Of a DNA stretch of 23,111 bases, positions 8,875 to 18,785 are shown one piece after another. A model generated the notes under the pieces. That model worked only from the letters and a program-made list of their open reading frames with translations. It was not told the DNA's origin and ran no database searches. Both the position numbers and the translations under genes were made by a program. Source of the DNA: Prasinococcaceae sp. CCMP 1430 (Eukaryota; Plantae; Prasinodermophyta); the NCBI GenBank assembly GCA_013416795.1, contig RQSC01000020.1, positions 273,188-296,298 of the forward strand. The letters run 5' to 3'. How positions within the stretch are numbered: the stretch's first letter is position 1; each line of letters starts with the position of its first letter.

Positions 8875-8875
8875 N

Positions 8876-12945: not shown

Positions 12946-13003
<58 letters not shown>

Positions 13004-13214
13004 GAGGGTGGGGGCGTGTGTGTTTGCTCGTGTGTGAGAACCGACGCGAGTGTGCATACGCACGCGCACACGGGCGCGCGCATACGCGCGCGCGCGCACC
13101 TGCACCGGCGCGAGCGCCTCCGCGGCAGTCGCCGTCGCCGCGCCGCCTAACGGCGCCCCGCCCGGCGGCGCCGCGTCCTCGTCGTCCGAGTCGTCGAAGT
13201 CGGCCGCGATGCCC
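11948..13214 (-). CDS. IFT43: Intraflagellar transport protein 43 (IFT-A), 5'-partial; exons 13214-13100, 12905-12810, 12554-12416, 12210-11948
   Basis: DIQEIPELEAQGEEELARAVAAAPRL...RVKPLGELDDD and LDLGALTGCLVPAEQLEEEDVLWDPPALLNRLGAEL match the two conserved IFT43 blocks. Splice phases 0, 0 and 1 are compatible. The start is probably in or next to the gap. Confidence 0.85.
12700..12762. repeat. Compound (CA)n(GA)n microsatellite, intronic
   Basis: Directly visible. Confidence 0.9.
12947..13000. repeat. (TG)n microsatellite, intronic
   Basis: Directly visible. Confidence 0.92.
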
Positions 13215-13417
13215 CTGGGTGGCAGGACGGAGTGCACACAGCCGTGTGTTCGCGGGCGGTGTGTGTGTGTGTTTGTGTGCGCGCGAGTGTGTAAGTGCGT
13301 GTGCGCGTGTGCGTAGAAGGGGGCGAGCGTGTGTGTGTATGCGTGTGTGAGTTTGCAGTCAAAGACGTCAGCGTCAAGGCAAATGCTCGTGCTTGCGCTC
13401 ATACACGCACGCACGTA

Positions 13418-13418
13418 T

Positions 13419-13449
<31 letters not shown>

Positions 13450-13454
13450 CACGC

Positions 13455-13512
<58 letters not shown>
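13418..13512. repeat. (CA)n microsatellite running into the assembly gap
   Basis: Directly visible. Confidence 0.92.
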
Positions 13513-13984
13513 NNNNNNNNNNNNNNNNNNNNNNNNNNNNNNNNNNNNNNNNNNNNNNNNNNNNNNNNNNNNNNNNNNNNNNNNNNNNNNNNNNNNNNNN
13601 NNNNNNNNNNNNNNNNNNNNNNNNNNNNNNNNNNNNNNNNNNNNNNNNNNNNNNNNNNNNNNNNNNNNNNNNNNNNNNNNNNNNNNNNNNNNNNNNNNNN
13701 NNNNNNNNNNNNNNNNNNNNNNNNNNNNNNNNNNNNNNNNNNNNNNNNNNNNNNNNNNNNNNNNNNNNNNNNNNNNNNNNNNNNNNNNNNNNNNNNNNNN
13801 NNNNNNNNNNNNNNNNNNNNNNNNNNNNNNNNNNNNNNNNNNNNNNNNNNNNNNNNNNNNNNNNNNNNNNNNNNNNNNNNNNNNNNNNNNNNNNNNNNNN
13901 NNNNNNNNNNNNNNNNNNNNNNNNNNNNNNNNNNNNNNNNNNNNNNNNNNNNNNNNNNNNNNNNNNNNNNNNNNNNNNNNNNNN
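13513..13984. other. Assembly gap (472 N); should hold the 5' ends of IFT43 and the SDR and their shared promoter
   Basis: Run of N; both flanking genes lack start codons. Confidence 0.95.
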
Positions 13985-14672
13985 CGCCGGCGAGCTCGGC
14001 GCGCCGGCGGCGCGCTACGTGCACCCCGACGGCGTCGACGCGACGCTCGCCGACGGCGGCGCGAGCCTCAAGGCGGCGGTTGAGGCAGCGGTGCGCGCGG
14101 GCGACGGAAGGCTCGGCGGGCTGGCGTACTGCGTCGGCTCGATCAACCTGAAGCCGCTGCGGCGCGCGGCCATCGCCGACCACATGGAGACGTACGCCGT
14201 GAACGTGGTGGGCGCAGCCGAGGCGCTGCGGCACGCGCACAAGGCGCTCGCCAAGGAGAGCGACGCGCGCAGGGCGGCCGCCGAGGCGGAAGGGGCGGCG
14301 CCTCCGTTCGCGCCGCCCGGCGTGGTATTCTTCTCGAGCGTCGCAGCGCGCGCTGGCCTGCCCAACCACACCATCATCTCGGCGGCCAAGGCCGGCGTCG
14401 AGGGCCTCGCCGTCGCTGCCGCGGCCGAGCTGGCGCCCAAGGTGCGCGTGAATGCGGTGGCGCCCTCGCTGAGCGCGTCGGCGATGGCCGCGCCCATGCT
14501 TTCCAACGAGGCCGTCGCGCAGGGCGTCGCCGCCGCGCACCCGCTCAGGCGCACGGGCCTGCCCACCGACCTCGCCGCAGCGGCCGACTACCTGCTCGGC
14601 GATGGCGCCGGCTGGGTCACCGGGCAGGTGCTGGCCGTGGACGGCGGGCGCGGCTCCATCGCGGGCAAGTAG
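13985..14672 (+). CDS. Short-chain dehydrogenase/reductase, atypical (no catalytic Tyr), 5'-partial
   Basis: LAYCVGSINLKP, VVFFSSVAA, NHTIISAAKAGVEGL, VRVNAVAPSL, HPLRRTG.P.D, WVTGQVLAVDGG. The Rossmann Gly-rich motif falls in the gap. Confidence 0.9.
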
Positions 14673-14788: not shown

Positions 14789-15451
14789 TTAGTACGAGCC
14801 GCGAGACCGCGACGCGGCCGCCGCCCAATAACGGACGAGTGCGCCGCATGCGACGCAGATCCCGGTGCCGACCCATACCACCACCGAGGCTACAAAGGCG
14901 CCCGCCATAGCAAAATAGAGGCTCAGGCCGATGGACTGGAAGGCGTTGCGTACCTCGGCAACCTCGAGCGACTTGCTAGACATGAAGCCCTGGCCCAAGG
15001 ACTGGAAGACGCCGCGTGCTTGGCCGGCGCCGACGCCCGGCGACCCTGCACCGGCGTGCGCCGACGGCGACGCCACCGCCGCCCCCGCGATCATCGACAA
15101 CACCGCAAGCTCCCCCAGCGTGCCGCTGAGAGAGAGTAATCCGAAGACGGCGTACATGCCCGTGACGTGCTTGCTGCCCTTGCCCAGCGCCTCCTTCCCA
15201 CAGGAGTACGCCAGCATGCCGCAGAAGTACAGGTGGGGGACAATGAAATGCGACGGCGTCAACACCAGCAAGAGCCACAGAACACGAATGATGAACCGGA
15301 CCAGGAGTGCCCTTGCAAATCCCGGGCTGCGCCAGGGTGCCCGCGGCGCACGGCTCGTCCGCGCCGGCGCCGTCTCCTCTCCCTCCTCCTTCTCGCCTCC
15401 CTCCTCTGCCCTTTTTTTCGCGGCGCCAGGCGCGCCGGTGCCATCATCCAT
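14789..15451 (-). CDS. Unrecognised membrane protein, 220 aa, short paralogue of the upstream repeat protein
   Basis: Contains YSCGKEALGKGSKHVTGMYAVFGLL and FVASVVVWVGTGI, both homologous to the repeat of 16096-18102. ATG at 15451. Confidence 0.75.
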   Translation of the reverse strand: MDDGTGAPGAAKKRAEEGGEKEEGEETAPARTSRAPRAPWRSPGFARALLVRFIIRVLWLLLVLTPSHFIVPHLYFCGMLAYSCGKEALGKGSKHVTGMYAVFGLLSLSGTLGELAVLSMIAGAAVASPSAHAGAGSPGVGAGQARGVFQSLGQGFMSSKSLEVAEVRNAFQSIGLSLYFAMAGAFVASVVVWVGTGICVACGALVRYWAAAASRSRGSY

Positions 15452-16095
15452 CGCGAACGCGCGGGTGCGCAAGAGCGCTCGCCTGCCAAAACGCGCGTGC
15501 GACCCCTGCGCGAGCTGGGGGGCGCGCGGAGCGCCGCCCGCGCGCTCTGTGGCTGGCGACGCGGCGCGTGCCCCGCGACGTGCACGTGCCCGCACAAATT
15601 GCCTCTGTCCGCAGACAGAGCATTTATTTGACAGCTCTTTTTATCCGAGCGCAGTGCGGGAACACTCGCGCGTGCGCAGCGACCAGCACTGCGACGAGCG
15701 GCTCGCGAACGGAGTGCGCGCGCTTGCGATGCGCGGCCACGCGTGATCAGGGTCGCCGTGCCTGCGGTTAACGTGCGCGCCGCGGCGCTCCTGGCGCTCA
15801 GGGTCGCATTCCTTCGCTTGCGTCGAGTTGCATGTCTCGTCTCTGACTTTGCAAACATACTTAAATATTCCGCTCGAGTGAGGCACCTTCAGGTGCTTAA
15901 TGTCTTCTTCAAGTCGTCGGTAGGCGCGTGCGCGCAGGCGCATGCGCAAGCGCACGCGCACGCGCGTGCGTGAGTGCTACTTGTCAATGTGCTCCTCTCG
16001 AAACTCCCAAGAGACACGGCGGTGAGCAGCACCGTCGGCCTCCGTTGGCGTCGCAAGGCAATGTTTCGGCGGCCGCACGCCCGGGCCGCCAGCGT

Positions 16096-18102
16096 TCAAT
16101 GGGCGCGACCGCTCACAAGGAGGTAGATGCCAGTGCCAGCCCACACCACCAGCGCAGCCAGAAAGACGCCGGCCGTAGACTTGAGCAGAGTCGAGGCCAG
16201 GGCACCAAAGAGGCCGCGTGCCTTCGCGGCGACGCCCTGGGGCTCTGGCTGCGACTTTTCGCCGGTAGGCTTTGACACCGGGGGTGCAATCGCTCGATTG
16301 AATTGAATCGTCGCCTCTGCCACCACGTACGCGACCAGGTACACTACTGCAAACACTCCCATCACAATGCTGAGCGCCAGTAGTGCGTACACCGCGTATA
16401 TGCCTTGGACGTGCTCACCGCCCTGGCCTACCGCATCGTTTGCGCAGTAGCTGAATGCGACGTAGATGCCTGTGCCGAGCCACACCACCAGAGTGGCCAG
16501 AAAGATGCAAGCCGTAACCAAGAGCAAGAGGAAGCCAAAAACGCGAAGTAAAAGGAAGAAAGCGGACGCCGTCTTCGCAACGTCAGTGATGACCTTAGAC
16601 CATTGCTTTTCCGCGGCATACGCCTTCAGCGCGTCTGCTATCAGTTGGGCGACGGCGTCTGTGACTACGTACGCAAGCGCAAGCCACGCCAGTGGCAAGC
16701 CAAGCGTCAACAGTGCGTAGACTGCGTACATTGCCTTCACGTGCTCACCACCCTGGCCCAATGCCTCTTTCGCGCAATAATGGAATCCGAAGTAGGCCCC
16801 TGTGCCGGCCCACACCACCAGAGCAGCCAAAAAGACGCAAGCAGTAGACAGGAACAGAGGCGGGCCCAAAGACACGAAGCAGTAGGCCGCTCTCTCGGCG
16901 ACGCCTTTAGGCCGCCACCTTCGGCTGGTATCGGTATACGCCGGCAGGTTGAATGCTGCCGGGGGCGAGACCGTGAACACGACGAAGTACGCAAGCGCAA
17001 GCCACGCCAGTGGCAAGCCAAGCGCCAACAGTGCGTAGACTGCGTACATACTCTTCACGTGCTCACCACCTCTACCCCATGCCTCTTTCGCGCAGTATTC
17101 GAATCCGAGGTAGGCCCCTGTGCCGGTCCAAACCATAAAAGCAGCCAGAAAGACGCCAGCTAGAGAAATGAACAAAGGCGGGGCCAAGGCAAAGAAGGAG
17201 TGGCGCGCCCTGTCCGCGACGCCCCCAGGCAGACACTTTGCATGTTCACCCAGCTCGGCCCAACCCTGCTCCAACAGCCCACAGCTCACACACAGCTGCA
17301 AAGCTCCCAAGACGACAAACAAAACAATAATGTAAGCAAGCGCAAGTCCTCCCAGCACGCAGCCGAGCGTCAACAATGCGTACACAGCGTACATTCCTTT
17401 CACATGCTCGTCCCCCTTCCCTAGTGTCTCCTGTGCGCAGTAGACGAGTGCGAGGTAGATGCCGGTAAAGGCCCACACCACGTACCCTACCGGGAAAAGG
17501 CCGAGTAAAATCGCAAAAATAAAAAGGACCAGCCTGCCGGCCCTGTCCAAAACTTGAGGAAAGCCCTGCCTGGTGGCCATGTCCAGAGGTCCAGGTTTGT
17601 TGTTGGCCGCTGGTGACTTCAAGGAGCCATCATTGTCCTGCGACTTTGCACCGGCACATACCATCAGTGACATGGTCGCTAAGCCCACTACATAGACCAG
17701 TCCTGCGATCAGAGAGAGCCCGATTCCTACCAACAGAGTCCACAAGGCGACGGCGACGAGTGCGAACCCCACGCGCGTGCCCATGACGTGCTCGTGTTCA
17801 TCGTCGACAGCCTGCCTTGTTGCATCTTTTGCCGCCATGAGAAACTCGAAAGATAAAAGGACTGCAAAGAAAATCACGAAGACAGCCCCAGCGACGACTT
17901 GAATCAATTCCGCCATGCTCCCCATGCTCTTCTGGCGGTCGGCCGAAGACGCCCGCGCCTGCACCGCCGCCTCCTTCAAGCTCTTCGCACCCGCCACAGC
18001 CCGCGTCTTCACGCCAGGCGCGCCTTCCACGATCACCGTCACCTGCGACTCAAGCTCCGAGTCGCCCCCCTCCTTCACGGCCCCCGACTTTCCGTCCTTC
18101 AT
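16096..18102 (-). CDS. Unrecognised multi-pass membrane protein with ~110-aa internal repeats (~668 aa; may splice at 16116 to a mini-exon 16003-15977)
   Basis: Long ORF with many hydrophobic segments. The motif VVW.GTG.Y..F.YCA.EA.G.G.EHV..MYAVYALL recurs four times clearly, with synonymous third-position variation between copies. First ATG is 18102 (the ORF track start 18111 is TTG). Confidence 0.85.
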   Translation of the reverse strand: MKDGKSGAVKEGGDSELESQVTVIVEGAPGVKTRAVAGAKSLKEAAVQARASSADRQKSMGSMAELIQVVAGAVFVIFFAVLLSFEFLMAAKDATRQAVDDEHEHVMGTRVGFALVAVALWTLLVGIGLSLIAGLVYVVGLATMSLMVCAGAKSQDNDGSLKSPAANNKPGPLDMATRQGFPQVLDRAGRLVLFIFAILLGLFPVGYVVWAFTGIYLALVYCAQETLGKGDEHVKGMYAVYALLTLGCVLGGLALAYIIVLFVVLGALQLCVSCGLLEQGWAELGEHAKCLPGGVADRARHSFFALAPPLFISLAGVFLAAFMVWTGTGAYLGFEYCAKEAWGRGGEHVKSMYAVYALLALGLPLAWLALAYFVVFTVSPPAAFNLPAYTDTSRRWRPKGVAERAAYCFVSLGPPLFLSTACVFLAALVVWAGTGAYFGFHYCAKEALGQGGEHVKAMYAVYALLTLGLPLAWLALAYVVTDAVAQLIADALKAYAAEKQWSKVITDVAKTASAFFLLLRVFGFLLLLVTACIFLATLVVWLGTGIYVAFSYCANDAVGQGGEHVQGIYAVYALLALSIVMGVFAVVYLVAYVVAEATIQFNRAIAPPVSKPTGEKSQPEPQGVAAKARGLFGALASTLLKSTAGVFLAALVVWAGTGIYLLVSGRAH
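16661..17160. repeat. Recent internal duplication within the membrane gene: ~16670-16840 vs ~16988-17158 (318-nt offset)
   Basis: Long identical stretches, e.g. acgcaagcgcaagccacgccagtggcaagccaagcg and cagtgcgtagactgcgtaca, occur in both copies. Confidence 0.85.
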
Positions 18103-18785
18103 GGCGCCCAAGGCTGAGACAGCCTGAGGGCACTACCACCAGCCAGCGCGTGACACGCGCCGCTCGCGTCCTCCGTGCGTGCACCTCCCCGCGCAAAATG
18201 TGACCGCCGCGGCGCTGTGGCCTGCGCGCTCGCTCGCCCTGACGGCGGGCCCGCGCTCGGCAGGCGCAAGCGCGCCCCGGGCGAGTGCGCGCTGTGGCCC
18301 GCACCGGGCGCGGCGCGGCGGTGCGCGCGCCTTTTTTTGCGCGCGCCGGCAAAATGCCTGCAAGAAAGAATGCCTTCGCAGGCACGCGAAGTGCCGCGTG
18401 TGATCTCATGTTCAGTGCGGGCAGCTCTTCTTCTTTGTGCTGTTGTTGCCAAAAGCGTGAGCTCTCGCGCCGGCGCGTGCCAGTGCCAGCGCGGGGCCGG
18501 CACCGCAGCCAGCGCACCGGCAGCGTCTGCATGCGCCTTGCAGGAGGCCCGCGCGCGGCGCGGCGCGCCACCCCTCTCTTCCCCCGCGCCCACGGCGCCT
18601 CGCCGCCCGCGTGCACGCTCGCGGGGTGCCGCAGCAGGAGGGGTGCCAGCGCTCACCGGATGTACAACAACATGAGCGCGTCGCTGGTTACAACGGGCTT
18701 GCAAATTTGCAGCCTCTCTCCTACACGCCCCCCCCCGCGTAGAGTACAAGCACGCAGCTGTCTGTGCCGCACGCGCGGCGCGCCA

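Follow-up and report, generated by a model that had tools for sequence, protein, structure and literature searches.

A 23,111-nucleotide (nt) stretch of DNA from Prasinococcaceae sp. CCMP 1430 (assembly GCA_013416795.1, contig RQSC01000020.1, positions 273,188 to 296,298; hereafter the window) carries on its minus strand a gene for a 668-residue membrane protein built from tandem helical hairpins. The protein belongs to a family without a described counterpart: no relative beyond its own lineage was found among 1.84 billion representative proteins, and its fold is not recognizable. More importantly, the gene behaves as a hypervariable locus at the population level in ocean metagenomes, a result that goes beyond an earlier note made on this DNA from its letters alone. 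The joint best explanation of our observations, which we hold tentatively, is a hairpin-array membrane protein with conserved tips and a hypervariable front under balancing or diversifying selection. To our knowledge, almost nothing is known of the cell biology and population biology of Prasinodermophyta, the phylum of this alga. The phylum is sister to all remaining green plants (PMC7455551).

The repeat gene, the parts of its product and the region in which it diverges from its alleles (haplotypes L001, L004, L006 and L011, see below) are as follows:

15869..18285, minus strand: intronless mRNA of the repeat gene, from transcriptome-like contigs, with a 5' untranslated region (UTR) of about 183 nt and a 3' UTR of about 227 nt.
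16096..18102, minus strand: coding sequence, 668 amino acids (aa) plus stop; ATG at 18102, stop codon at 16096-16098.
17908..18102, minus strand: hydrophilic N-terminal region of mixed charge, aa 1-65, about 90-96% identical in nucleotides between lineages; probably cytoplasmic.
17533..17907, minus strand: degenerate first unit, aa 66-190, boundaries approximate; the most variable part, with at least three allele classes.
17203..17532, minus strand: canonical unit 1 (first type), aa 191-300, loop YCAQETLGKGDEHV; clade support 100/98.
16891..17202, minus strand: canonical unit 2 (middle type), aa 301-404, loop YCAKEAWGRGGEHV; pairs with unit 2 of L001.
16543..16890, minus strand: canonical unit 3 (middle type), aa 405-520, loop YCAKEALGQGGEHV; groups with unit 2 of L004 and L006, support 98/97.
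16180..16542, minus strand: canonical unit 4 (last type), aa 521-641, loop YCANDAVGQGGEHVQGIY; clade support 100/97, short branches.
16099..16179, minus strand: C-terminal half unit, aa 642-668, helix A only (VFLAALVVWAGTGIYLL) followed by the stop, from translation and family comparison.
16650..18000 (approximate), minus strand: divergence island, 55-80% identity with insertions and deletions (indels) of whole units, in 150-nt bins against L001, L004, L006 and L011.

The window protein is an integral membrane protein with about 11 predicted helices. Hydropathy and charge maps of its 668 residues reveal eleven uncharged stretches of 20-42 residues each, and the chain runs from a hydrophilic N-terminus through a degenerate unit and four canonical helical-hairpin units of about 105-120 aa to a terminal half unit. 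Each canonical unit runs from a basic linker (motif W-R-x-x-G-V-x-D/E-R-A) through helix A, which ends in VVW.GTG.Y..F.YCA, and the loop KEALG.GGEHVK to helix B, which begins with MYAVYALL.LG; both helices are long and hydrophobic. The Glu, the Glu-His pair and the Cys are kept in all canonical units of the window locus. In the degenerate first unit, a helix is followed by the loop DDEHEHVMG.RV and then by a hydrophobic stretch of 42 aa with the motif CAG.K at its end; this unit is a true diverged copy of the canonical unit, given its match to the canonical-unit profile (hhalign probability 84%, E=8e-6).

The earlier note had described a repeat of about 110 aa with a degenerate copy and a sixth, partial unit, and all of this is borne out. 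The EHV codons lie at 17793, 17409, 17064, 16746 and 16416, with exactly the spacings claimed (384, 345, 318 and 330 nt); units 1 and 4 resemble each other far beyond chance (BLASTP E=2e-17); the consensus of 23 aligned family units reproduces the one proposed; and the partial unit is real, comprising helix A only, stopping just before the YCA motif and ending in the same way in the paralogue P0005. The proposed succession of transmembrane helix, loop and transmembrane helix in each unit also stands, but the additional hydrophobic segments suggested for each unit do not, there being two long helices per unit and about 11 in total. The repeat is detectable at the protein level only: Tandem Repeats Finder reported no array in the repeat gene, and the window units are 65-87% identical to one another in nucleotides.

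AlphaFold models of the full-length protein and of a two-unit construct reached a predicted local distance difference test score (pLDDT) of 45 and 66 and a predicted template modelling score (pTM) of 0.31 and 0.40, respectively; the first was unusable as a structure and the second informative for secondary structure only. The predictions consist entirely of helical hairpins, with helices of about 46 aa (four per two units) interrupted only at the G.GG turn. The linkers carry a summed net charge of about +8 and the loops of about -6; under the positive-inside rule, the N-terminus and linkers would therefore be cytoplasmic, and the Glu/His loops would face outward or into a lumen.

The repeat gene is a real, single-copy, intronless and well-transcribed nuclear gene of a green picoalga with a GC content of about 70%. 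Its minus-strand open reading frame (ORF) spans 16096..18111, and translation from the first ATG, at 18102, gives the 668 aa. X1 and X2, two small transcriptome-like assemblies of this organism that come from separate studies, contain contigs that are colinear with the window at 15869-16698, 16677-17016 and 16995-18285, free of mismatches, gaps and joints. Their coverage of the window is confined to two gene bodies, 15869-18285 and 14829-15499; they are missing from 15500-15868 and from position 18286 on, both of which are covered by a DNA assembly (X9). On the strength of this gene-body-only coverage, X1 and X2, tagged 'RNA?', were taken as RNA-derived. Such gapless contigs, limited to the gene body, indicate an intronless mRNA of about 2.4 kb. 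Contig depth is 116-142 for the repeat gene versus 22 for the small family gene downstream. The depth of X9 is flat, about 38x, over the region, and the genome therefore holds no second copy at 90% identity or more. A spliced model, suggested by the ending of the half unit at GTGAGC and leading through an intron into the ORF 14789-15595, was rejected because the two transcripts are separate and colinear with an untranscribed gap (15500-15868) between them, and because the transcriptome paralogue P0005 and all orthologues stop at the same half unit.

Four proteins, P0001-P0004 (747, 524, 532 and 425 aa), encoded on contigs from Tara Oceans metagenomes and two Logan runs, share their first ~58 and last ~160 residues with the window protein, including its start (MKDGKSG...) and its end (...LLVSGRAH). 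The window and these contigs have the same gene order: a RecQ-like gene, the repeat gene, the small family gene of about 220 aa and a minus-strand gene. P0001-P0004 are therefore orthologous alleles from related wild lineages, and their classification as paralogues was rejected on the shared synteny. Alleles were compared among five haplotypes, namely the window (WIN), L001, L004, L006 and L011.

The flanks of the five lineages are 94-97% identical in pairwise comparisons, and the flanks of the Tara and Logan contigs are 94-99% identical to those of the window. Identity is 96-97% in the intergenic DNA that separates the two family genes, and 0.94-1.00 in the 150-nt bins on either side of the island. 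The gene body, in contrast, differs by 20-45%, against a mere 3-5% in the flanks of the lineages concerned. Synonymous divergence (dS) within the island is 0.3-0.9, about ten times the local neutral level, with the proviso that alignment there is uncertain, which inflates both dS and nonsynonymous divergence (dN). The degenerate first unit retains 54-63% nucleotide identity between lineages, with a dS of 0.6-0.9, and canonical unit 4 is conserved at 88-97%. Despite the divergence and many indels, none of the five lineages has lost the reading frame.

The alleles also differ in architecture, with 2, 3, 3, 4 or 5 canonical units per orthologous allele. In a tree of all units, the unit types are positional, with well-separated first and last types, while the number of middle units is 0 in L011, 1 in L004 and L006, 2 in the window and 3 in L001. 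Therefore, alleles differ by the gain or loss of whole hairpins, not by concerted homogenization. At least three deep classes can be distinguished in the degenerate first unit, represented by the window, by L001/L004/L006 and by L011/P0008. Among the five haplotypes, the island tree, which unites L001, L004 and L006 (98/97), conflicts with the flank tree, which unites WIN, L004 and L006 (96/99). P0010 looks like a recombinant, or mosaic, between two classes. The same P0003 sequence recurs in five independent Tara assemblies and the same P0002 sequence in two Logan runs, and the haplotypes are therefore not assembly chimeras.

Comparison of units within the window gene gave a dN/dS of 0.18-0.38 for the unit core (0.61 for the youngest pair); in the loop motif, dS is saturated and dN is 0.09-0.19. 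The earlier note had read the synonymous differences between copies as a sign of purifying selection, and this view holds for the unit core, where the hairpin tip W.GTG.Y..YCA.EALG.GGEHV..MYAVYALL is under purifying selection. The roughly 40 constrained residues per unit are the loop-proximal halves of both helices and the 8-16-residue loop, whereas the loop-distal helix halves and the basic linkers change almost freely, with a ratio of nonsynonymous to synonymous differences per site (pN/pS) near 1. Between alleles, pN/pS in the C-terminal half unit is 0.10-0.22 in three pairs and 0.63-0.81 in two, with few changes throughout. Over most of the island it is 0.6-1.4, and for aa 61-121 it rises to 3.7 and 2.6, values for which the Fisher test is marginal (p ~0.03) and uncorrected for multiple windows.

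Two signs of balancing selection are present among the five haplotypes: divergence is far above that of the neutral flanks, and the allele genealogy is discordant with the lineage genealogy. Relaxed constraint is ruled out as the sole cause because the island is about ten times more diverged than the adjacent intergenic DNA. Therefore, the choice lies between old allele classes under balancing or diversifying selection and the import of diverged paralogue sequence. As for possible donors of such an import, the first units of the known paralogues are less than 40% identical, and the genome lacks a copy at 90% identity or more. Transcription-linked mutagenesis was also considered as an origin of the island, but the 3' third of the transcript matches the flanks in its degree of conservation, and the idea was rejected on that ground.

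We took the hairpin tip, as the conserved element, to be the working part of the protein; this would be the short acidic/His loop between tightly packed helix ends in which Gly, Ala, Trp and Tyr are abundant. The protein would display a row of near-identical acidic/His hairpin tips, Cys-bearing at the window locus, on its non-cytoplasmic face. These tips would most likely bind a cation or a small ligand, or form a docking surface, with the valency set by the number of units. A Glu...Glu-His loop is present in at least one unit of almost every family member (the small paralogue has Lys-His), so binding of a cation or ligand by the hairpin tip is conceivable. The N-proximal variable module may be reshuffled through unequal and inter-allelic recombination, and a co-evolving partner, perhaps a virus or conspecific cells, may maintain its diversity through balancing or diversifying selection. 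Allele-specific properties would then come from this variable first module. A more specific proposal, which we consider rather unlikely, is that the protein is a recognition determinant, acting as a virus-entry or resistance factor or as a self/non-self marker of a colony-forming alga. Its ancient classes would be under frequency-dependent selection, with the specificity residing in the variable first module and the hairpin number tuning the Glu/His array.

Several points weigh against selected diversity in a hairpin array of this kind. With the loops outward, most variable residues are predicted to sit in the inner half of the membrane and in the cytoplasmic linkers, where surface-directed selection is not expected; only the first, longer loop would be both exposed and variable. 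A pN/pS near 1 over most of the island fits weak constraint equally well, the Fisher tests for values above 1 are marginal, and the uncertain alignment adds to the apparent divergence. Sequence converted from paralogues outside the sample could pass for ancient allele classes. The 'alleles' are metagenome consensus contigs, which may stand above or below species rank, and the structural models are of low confidence.

A contrary reading is that of a weakly constrained filler gene, in which variability is neutral and arises from unequal crossing-over and ectopic conversion, or from chimeric metagenome assembly. Beyond the pN/pS of the island, it draws on the tandem paralogues as possible donors, on the mosaic appearance of P0010 and on the breaking of assemblies at unit borders within the repeats. 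Yet we regard it as unlikely. Relaxed constraint alone does not reach the divergence of the island relative to the intergenic DNA beside it, and the frame has been preserved in all five lineages. The degenerate first unit resembles nothing else within the gene and lacks a genomic copy at 90% identity or more, and the first units of the known paralogues are less than 40% identical. Chimeric assembly is contradicted by the identical haplotypes that recur in independent assemblies, and purifying selection on the motif and the C-terminus is at odds with a filler.

Two further explanations concern the repeated units themselves. The earlier note had suggested that the units could form a pseudo-symmetric ring, with the His and Cys of the loops contributing to a metal-, haem- or redox-binding site; in the form considered here, these residues would all meet at a single such centre. 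The invariance of Glu, Glu-His and Cys in each canonical unit of the window locus, the purifying selection on the motif and the regular hairpins of similar length would suit such a ring, but its fixed stoichiometry is not conserved among orthologous alleles with two to five canonical units. Moreover, Cys is replaced by Phe in the paralogues, whose second unit has lost the EH pair, AlphaFold gives no confident tertiary packing, and no haem or metalloprotein family was matched; we thus consider the ring quite improbable. The free variation in unit number would also fit a polyprotein that is cut at its conserved basic linkers into small two-helix membrane proteins, with the unit number determining dosage only, as in the light-harvesting polyproteins of Euglena and dinoflagellates or in polyubiquitin. 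The common linker motif, the high transcript depth and the existence of one-unit family members (WIN2, the small gene of the window, and P0009) agree with this. However, the units are not interchangeable, since first, middle and last types hold their positions across all alleles, and every member has a unique N-terminal module and a terminal half unit, suggesting a single folded chain. Cleavage of this kind is very improbable in our judgement.

The earlier note had been unable to place the protein in any transporter or channel family, and our searches agree that it is an unrecognized multi-pass membrane protein. The best Pfam matches, at 12.6 and 12.8 bits, fell well short of the respective family cut-offs (25 and 29), and the best NCBIfam matches (E=0.13-0.17) were far from the cut-off. 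The unit profile found nothing among PDB sequences at E<=10, and the best Foldseek match in the PDB had E=2.4. In the ESM Atlas, the feature search gave a best score of 0.75, which is noise, and the fold search a TM-score of at most 0.46 by query, with a top by-target value of 0.50. A wide search with VIA-align returned no match for the repeat protein. An exhaustive hmmsearch with the unit profile recovered 8 proteins from the 1.84 billion representatives, all of the same family, and a word-indexed protein search recovered 7 proteins; one viral-contig scan and two JGI metagenome scans yielded none. Literature on Prasinoderma hypervariability or viruses contained nothing concerning the hairpin-repeat family.

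Two known families with tandem membrane units were compared. The light-harvesting (LHC) family is not matched (no PF00504 hit at E<=1), and its motif, E-x-x-N/H-x-R in paired helices, is not in the unit consensus; the feature shared with LHC-like proteins, including their polyprotein forms, is limited to tandem membrane units. GDT1/UPF0016 cation transporters consist of two repeats of three transmembrane helices, each with the loop motif E-x-G-D-(K/R)-(T/S). The window protein has no Pfam match to this family (PF01169), and its units differ in having two helices and the loop E-A-L-G-x-G-G-E-H.

We propose as the hallmark of the family a W.GTG.Y...Y(C/F)A.EALG.G.EHV..MYAVYALL unit together with a C-terminal half unit ending after GTGIY, both of which are found in the window protein. 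The family is restricted to the Prasinoderma lineage and has several paralogues, often in tandem. Its sole named relative is the uncharacterized protein A0A7R9TAD8 (P0005) from an MMETSP transcriptome of Prasinoderma coloniale, which is 37% identical to the window protein. P0005 and the metagenomic proteins P0006, P0007, P0011 and P0012 have an acidic N-terminus, a degenerate first unit and the C-terminal half-unit ending of the window protein; canonical units of the P0005 type carry the loop EALGKGGEHVKGMYAVYALL. P0005 differs in its separate locus (L002) and in having 1-2 units instead of 4, and in all five of these paralogues the loop Cys is Phe and the second unit is without the EH pair. 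P0005 and P0006 again combine a variable front with a conserved back: their identity is 23-37% across the first ~200 aa but 87-100% in the remainder. The paralogous loci involved are L002/L003, L012 and L013. In L012, family genes stand in tandem, P0012 being followed by a P0011-like gene, and L012 2546-2908 corresponds to L013 1-363 at 99.4%.

A second member of the family (WIN2), which the earlier note does not mention, lies 650 nt downstream of the repeat gene:

14789..15451, minus strand: small family gene, 220 aa; transcript contigs at 14829-15499.

Its product starts with an acidic N-terminus, continues with a single unit (loop YSCGKEALGKGSKHV) and closes with a half unit, and its loop reads SKHV where the repeat gene has GEHV. 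In contrast to the repeat gene, it is conserved between lineages and transcribed at lower depth: it is 96-97% identical in nucleotides to its orthologues, with a dS of 0.035-0.07 and a dN/dS of 0.35-0.77. Neither exact protein (16099-18102; 14792-15451) is present in a collection of 15 billion sequences, and both genes may be unannotated or differently modelled in public annotation.

The GC content of the window is about 70%, and that of the published Prasinoderma coloniale genome is 69.8% (PMC7455551). Taken with the one named relative of the protein, which is from that species, this makes the source of the window very probably Prasinoderma, in all likelihood P. coloniale. Within this background, the repeat gene is a compositional outlier, with 57-61% GC over 16000-18000 and a GC content at third codon positions (GC3) of 0.69, compared with 0.81 in the small paralogue, ~0.88 in one nearby ORF and 0.8-0.88 in its neighbours overall. 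All five alleles of the repeat gene have a low GC3 (0.68-0.71), which, speculatively, would fit reduced recombination between allele classes.

Simple repeats were observed on either side of the coding sequence. A (CGCGCA)n / GCGCAAGCGCAT microsatellite occupies 15931-15970, at the end of the 3' UTR, where the depth of X9 is 812 versus ~40 elsewhere; many X9 contigs join there, and the motif is therefore dispersed across the genome. At 18546-18570, between the promoter region of the repeat gene and the RecQ-like gene, many X9 contigs end or join in a GC-rich low-complexity stretch that looks like a further dispersed simple repeat. The window also contains an assembly gap of 472 N (13513-13984), which causes an apparent GC dip at 13001-14000, and one N at 8875.

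If the diversity is selected, the locus marks a molecular interface of a globally distributed picoalga with its viruses or its own kind, and it is an example of a protein that survives the addition and removal of complete transmembrane hairpins as repeat units. If it is not, the locus is a natural experiment on the minimal sequence needs of a membrane hairpin. The conserved 40-residue hairpin tip offers a well-defined target for binding and structural studies. Should the protein prove to be a recognition determinant, it would be a kind of polymorphic membrane receptor not seen before, and one from the green lineage that branched off first.

Yeast FLO adhesins are encoded by cell-surface genes whose intragenic tandem repeats differ in copy number between strains. 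As in these adhesins, in-frame units have been gained and lost here between close relatives at one locus with conserved termini. Unlike the extracellular Ser/Thr-rich stretch of FLO proteins, however, the unit is a pair of membrane helices, the units are old, diverged and positionally fixed, and the cell-surface location is only putative. Allelic dimorphism characterizes Plasmodium merozoite surface protein 1 (MSP1), and fungal het and Dictyostelium tgrB1/C1 are allorecognition or incompatibility loci. The window protein has no sequence or fold relation to any of them, its variable residues are mostly predicted to be membrane-embedded or cytoplasmic, and the comparison covers five metagenomic haplotypes instead of a population survey. 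What it has in common with these loci is that conserved blocks flank a few very old allele classes, far more diverged than the neighbouring DNA, and that the genealogy of the variable blocks is discordant with that of the flanks.

Among green picoalgae, the Mamiellales possess hypervariable outlier chromosomes linked to virus resistance and mating type (PMC5498103). Unlike these chromosomes, the region described here is a 1.4-kb island in one gene and belongs to another phylum, Prasinodermophyta, and any link of it with viruses or mating would be hypothetical. Like them, it is a region of unusual diversity in a marine green picoalga, with a GC content below the genome average.

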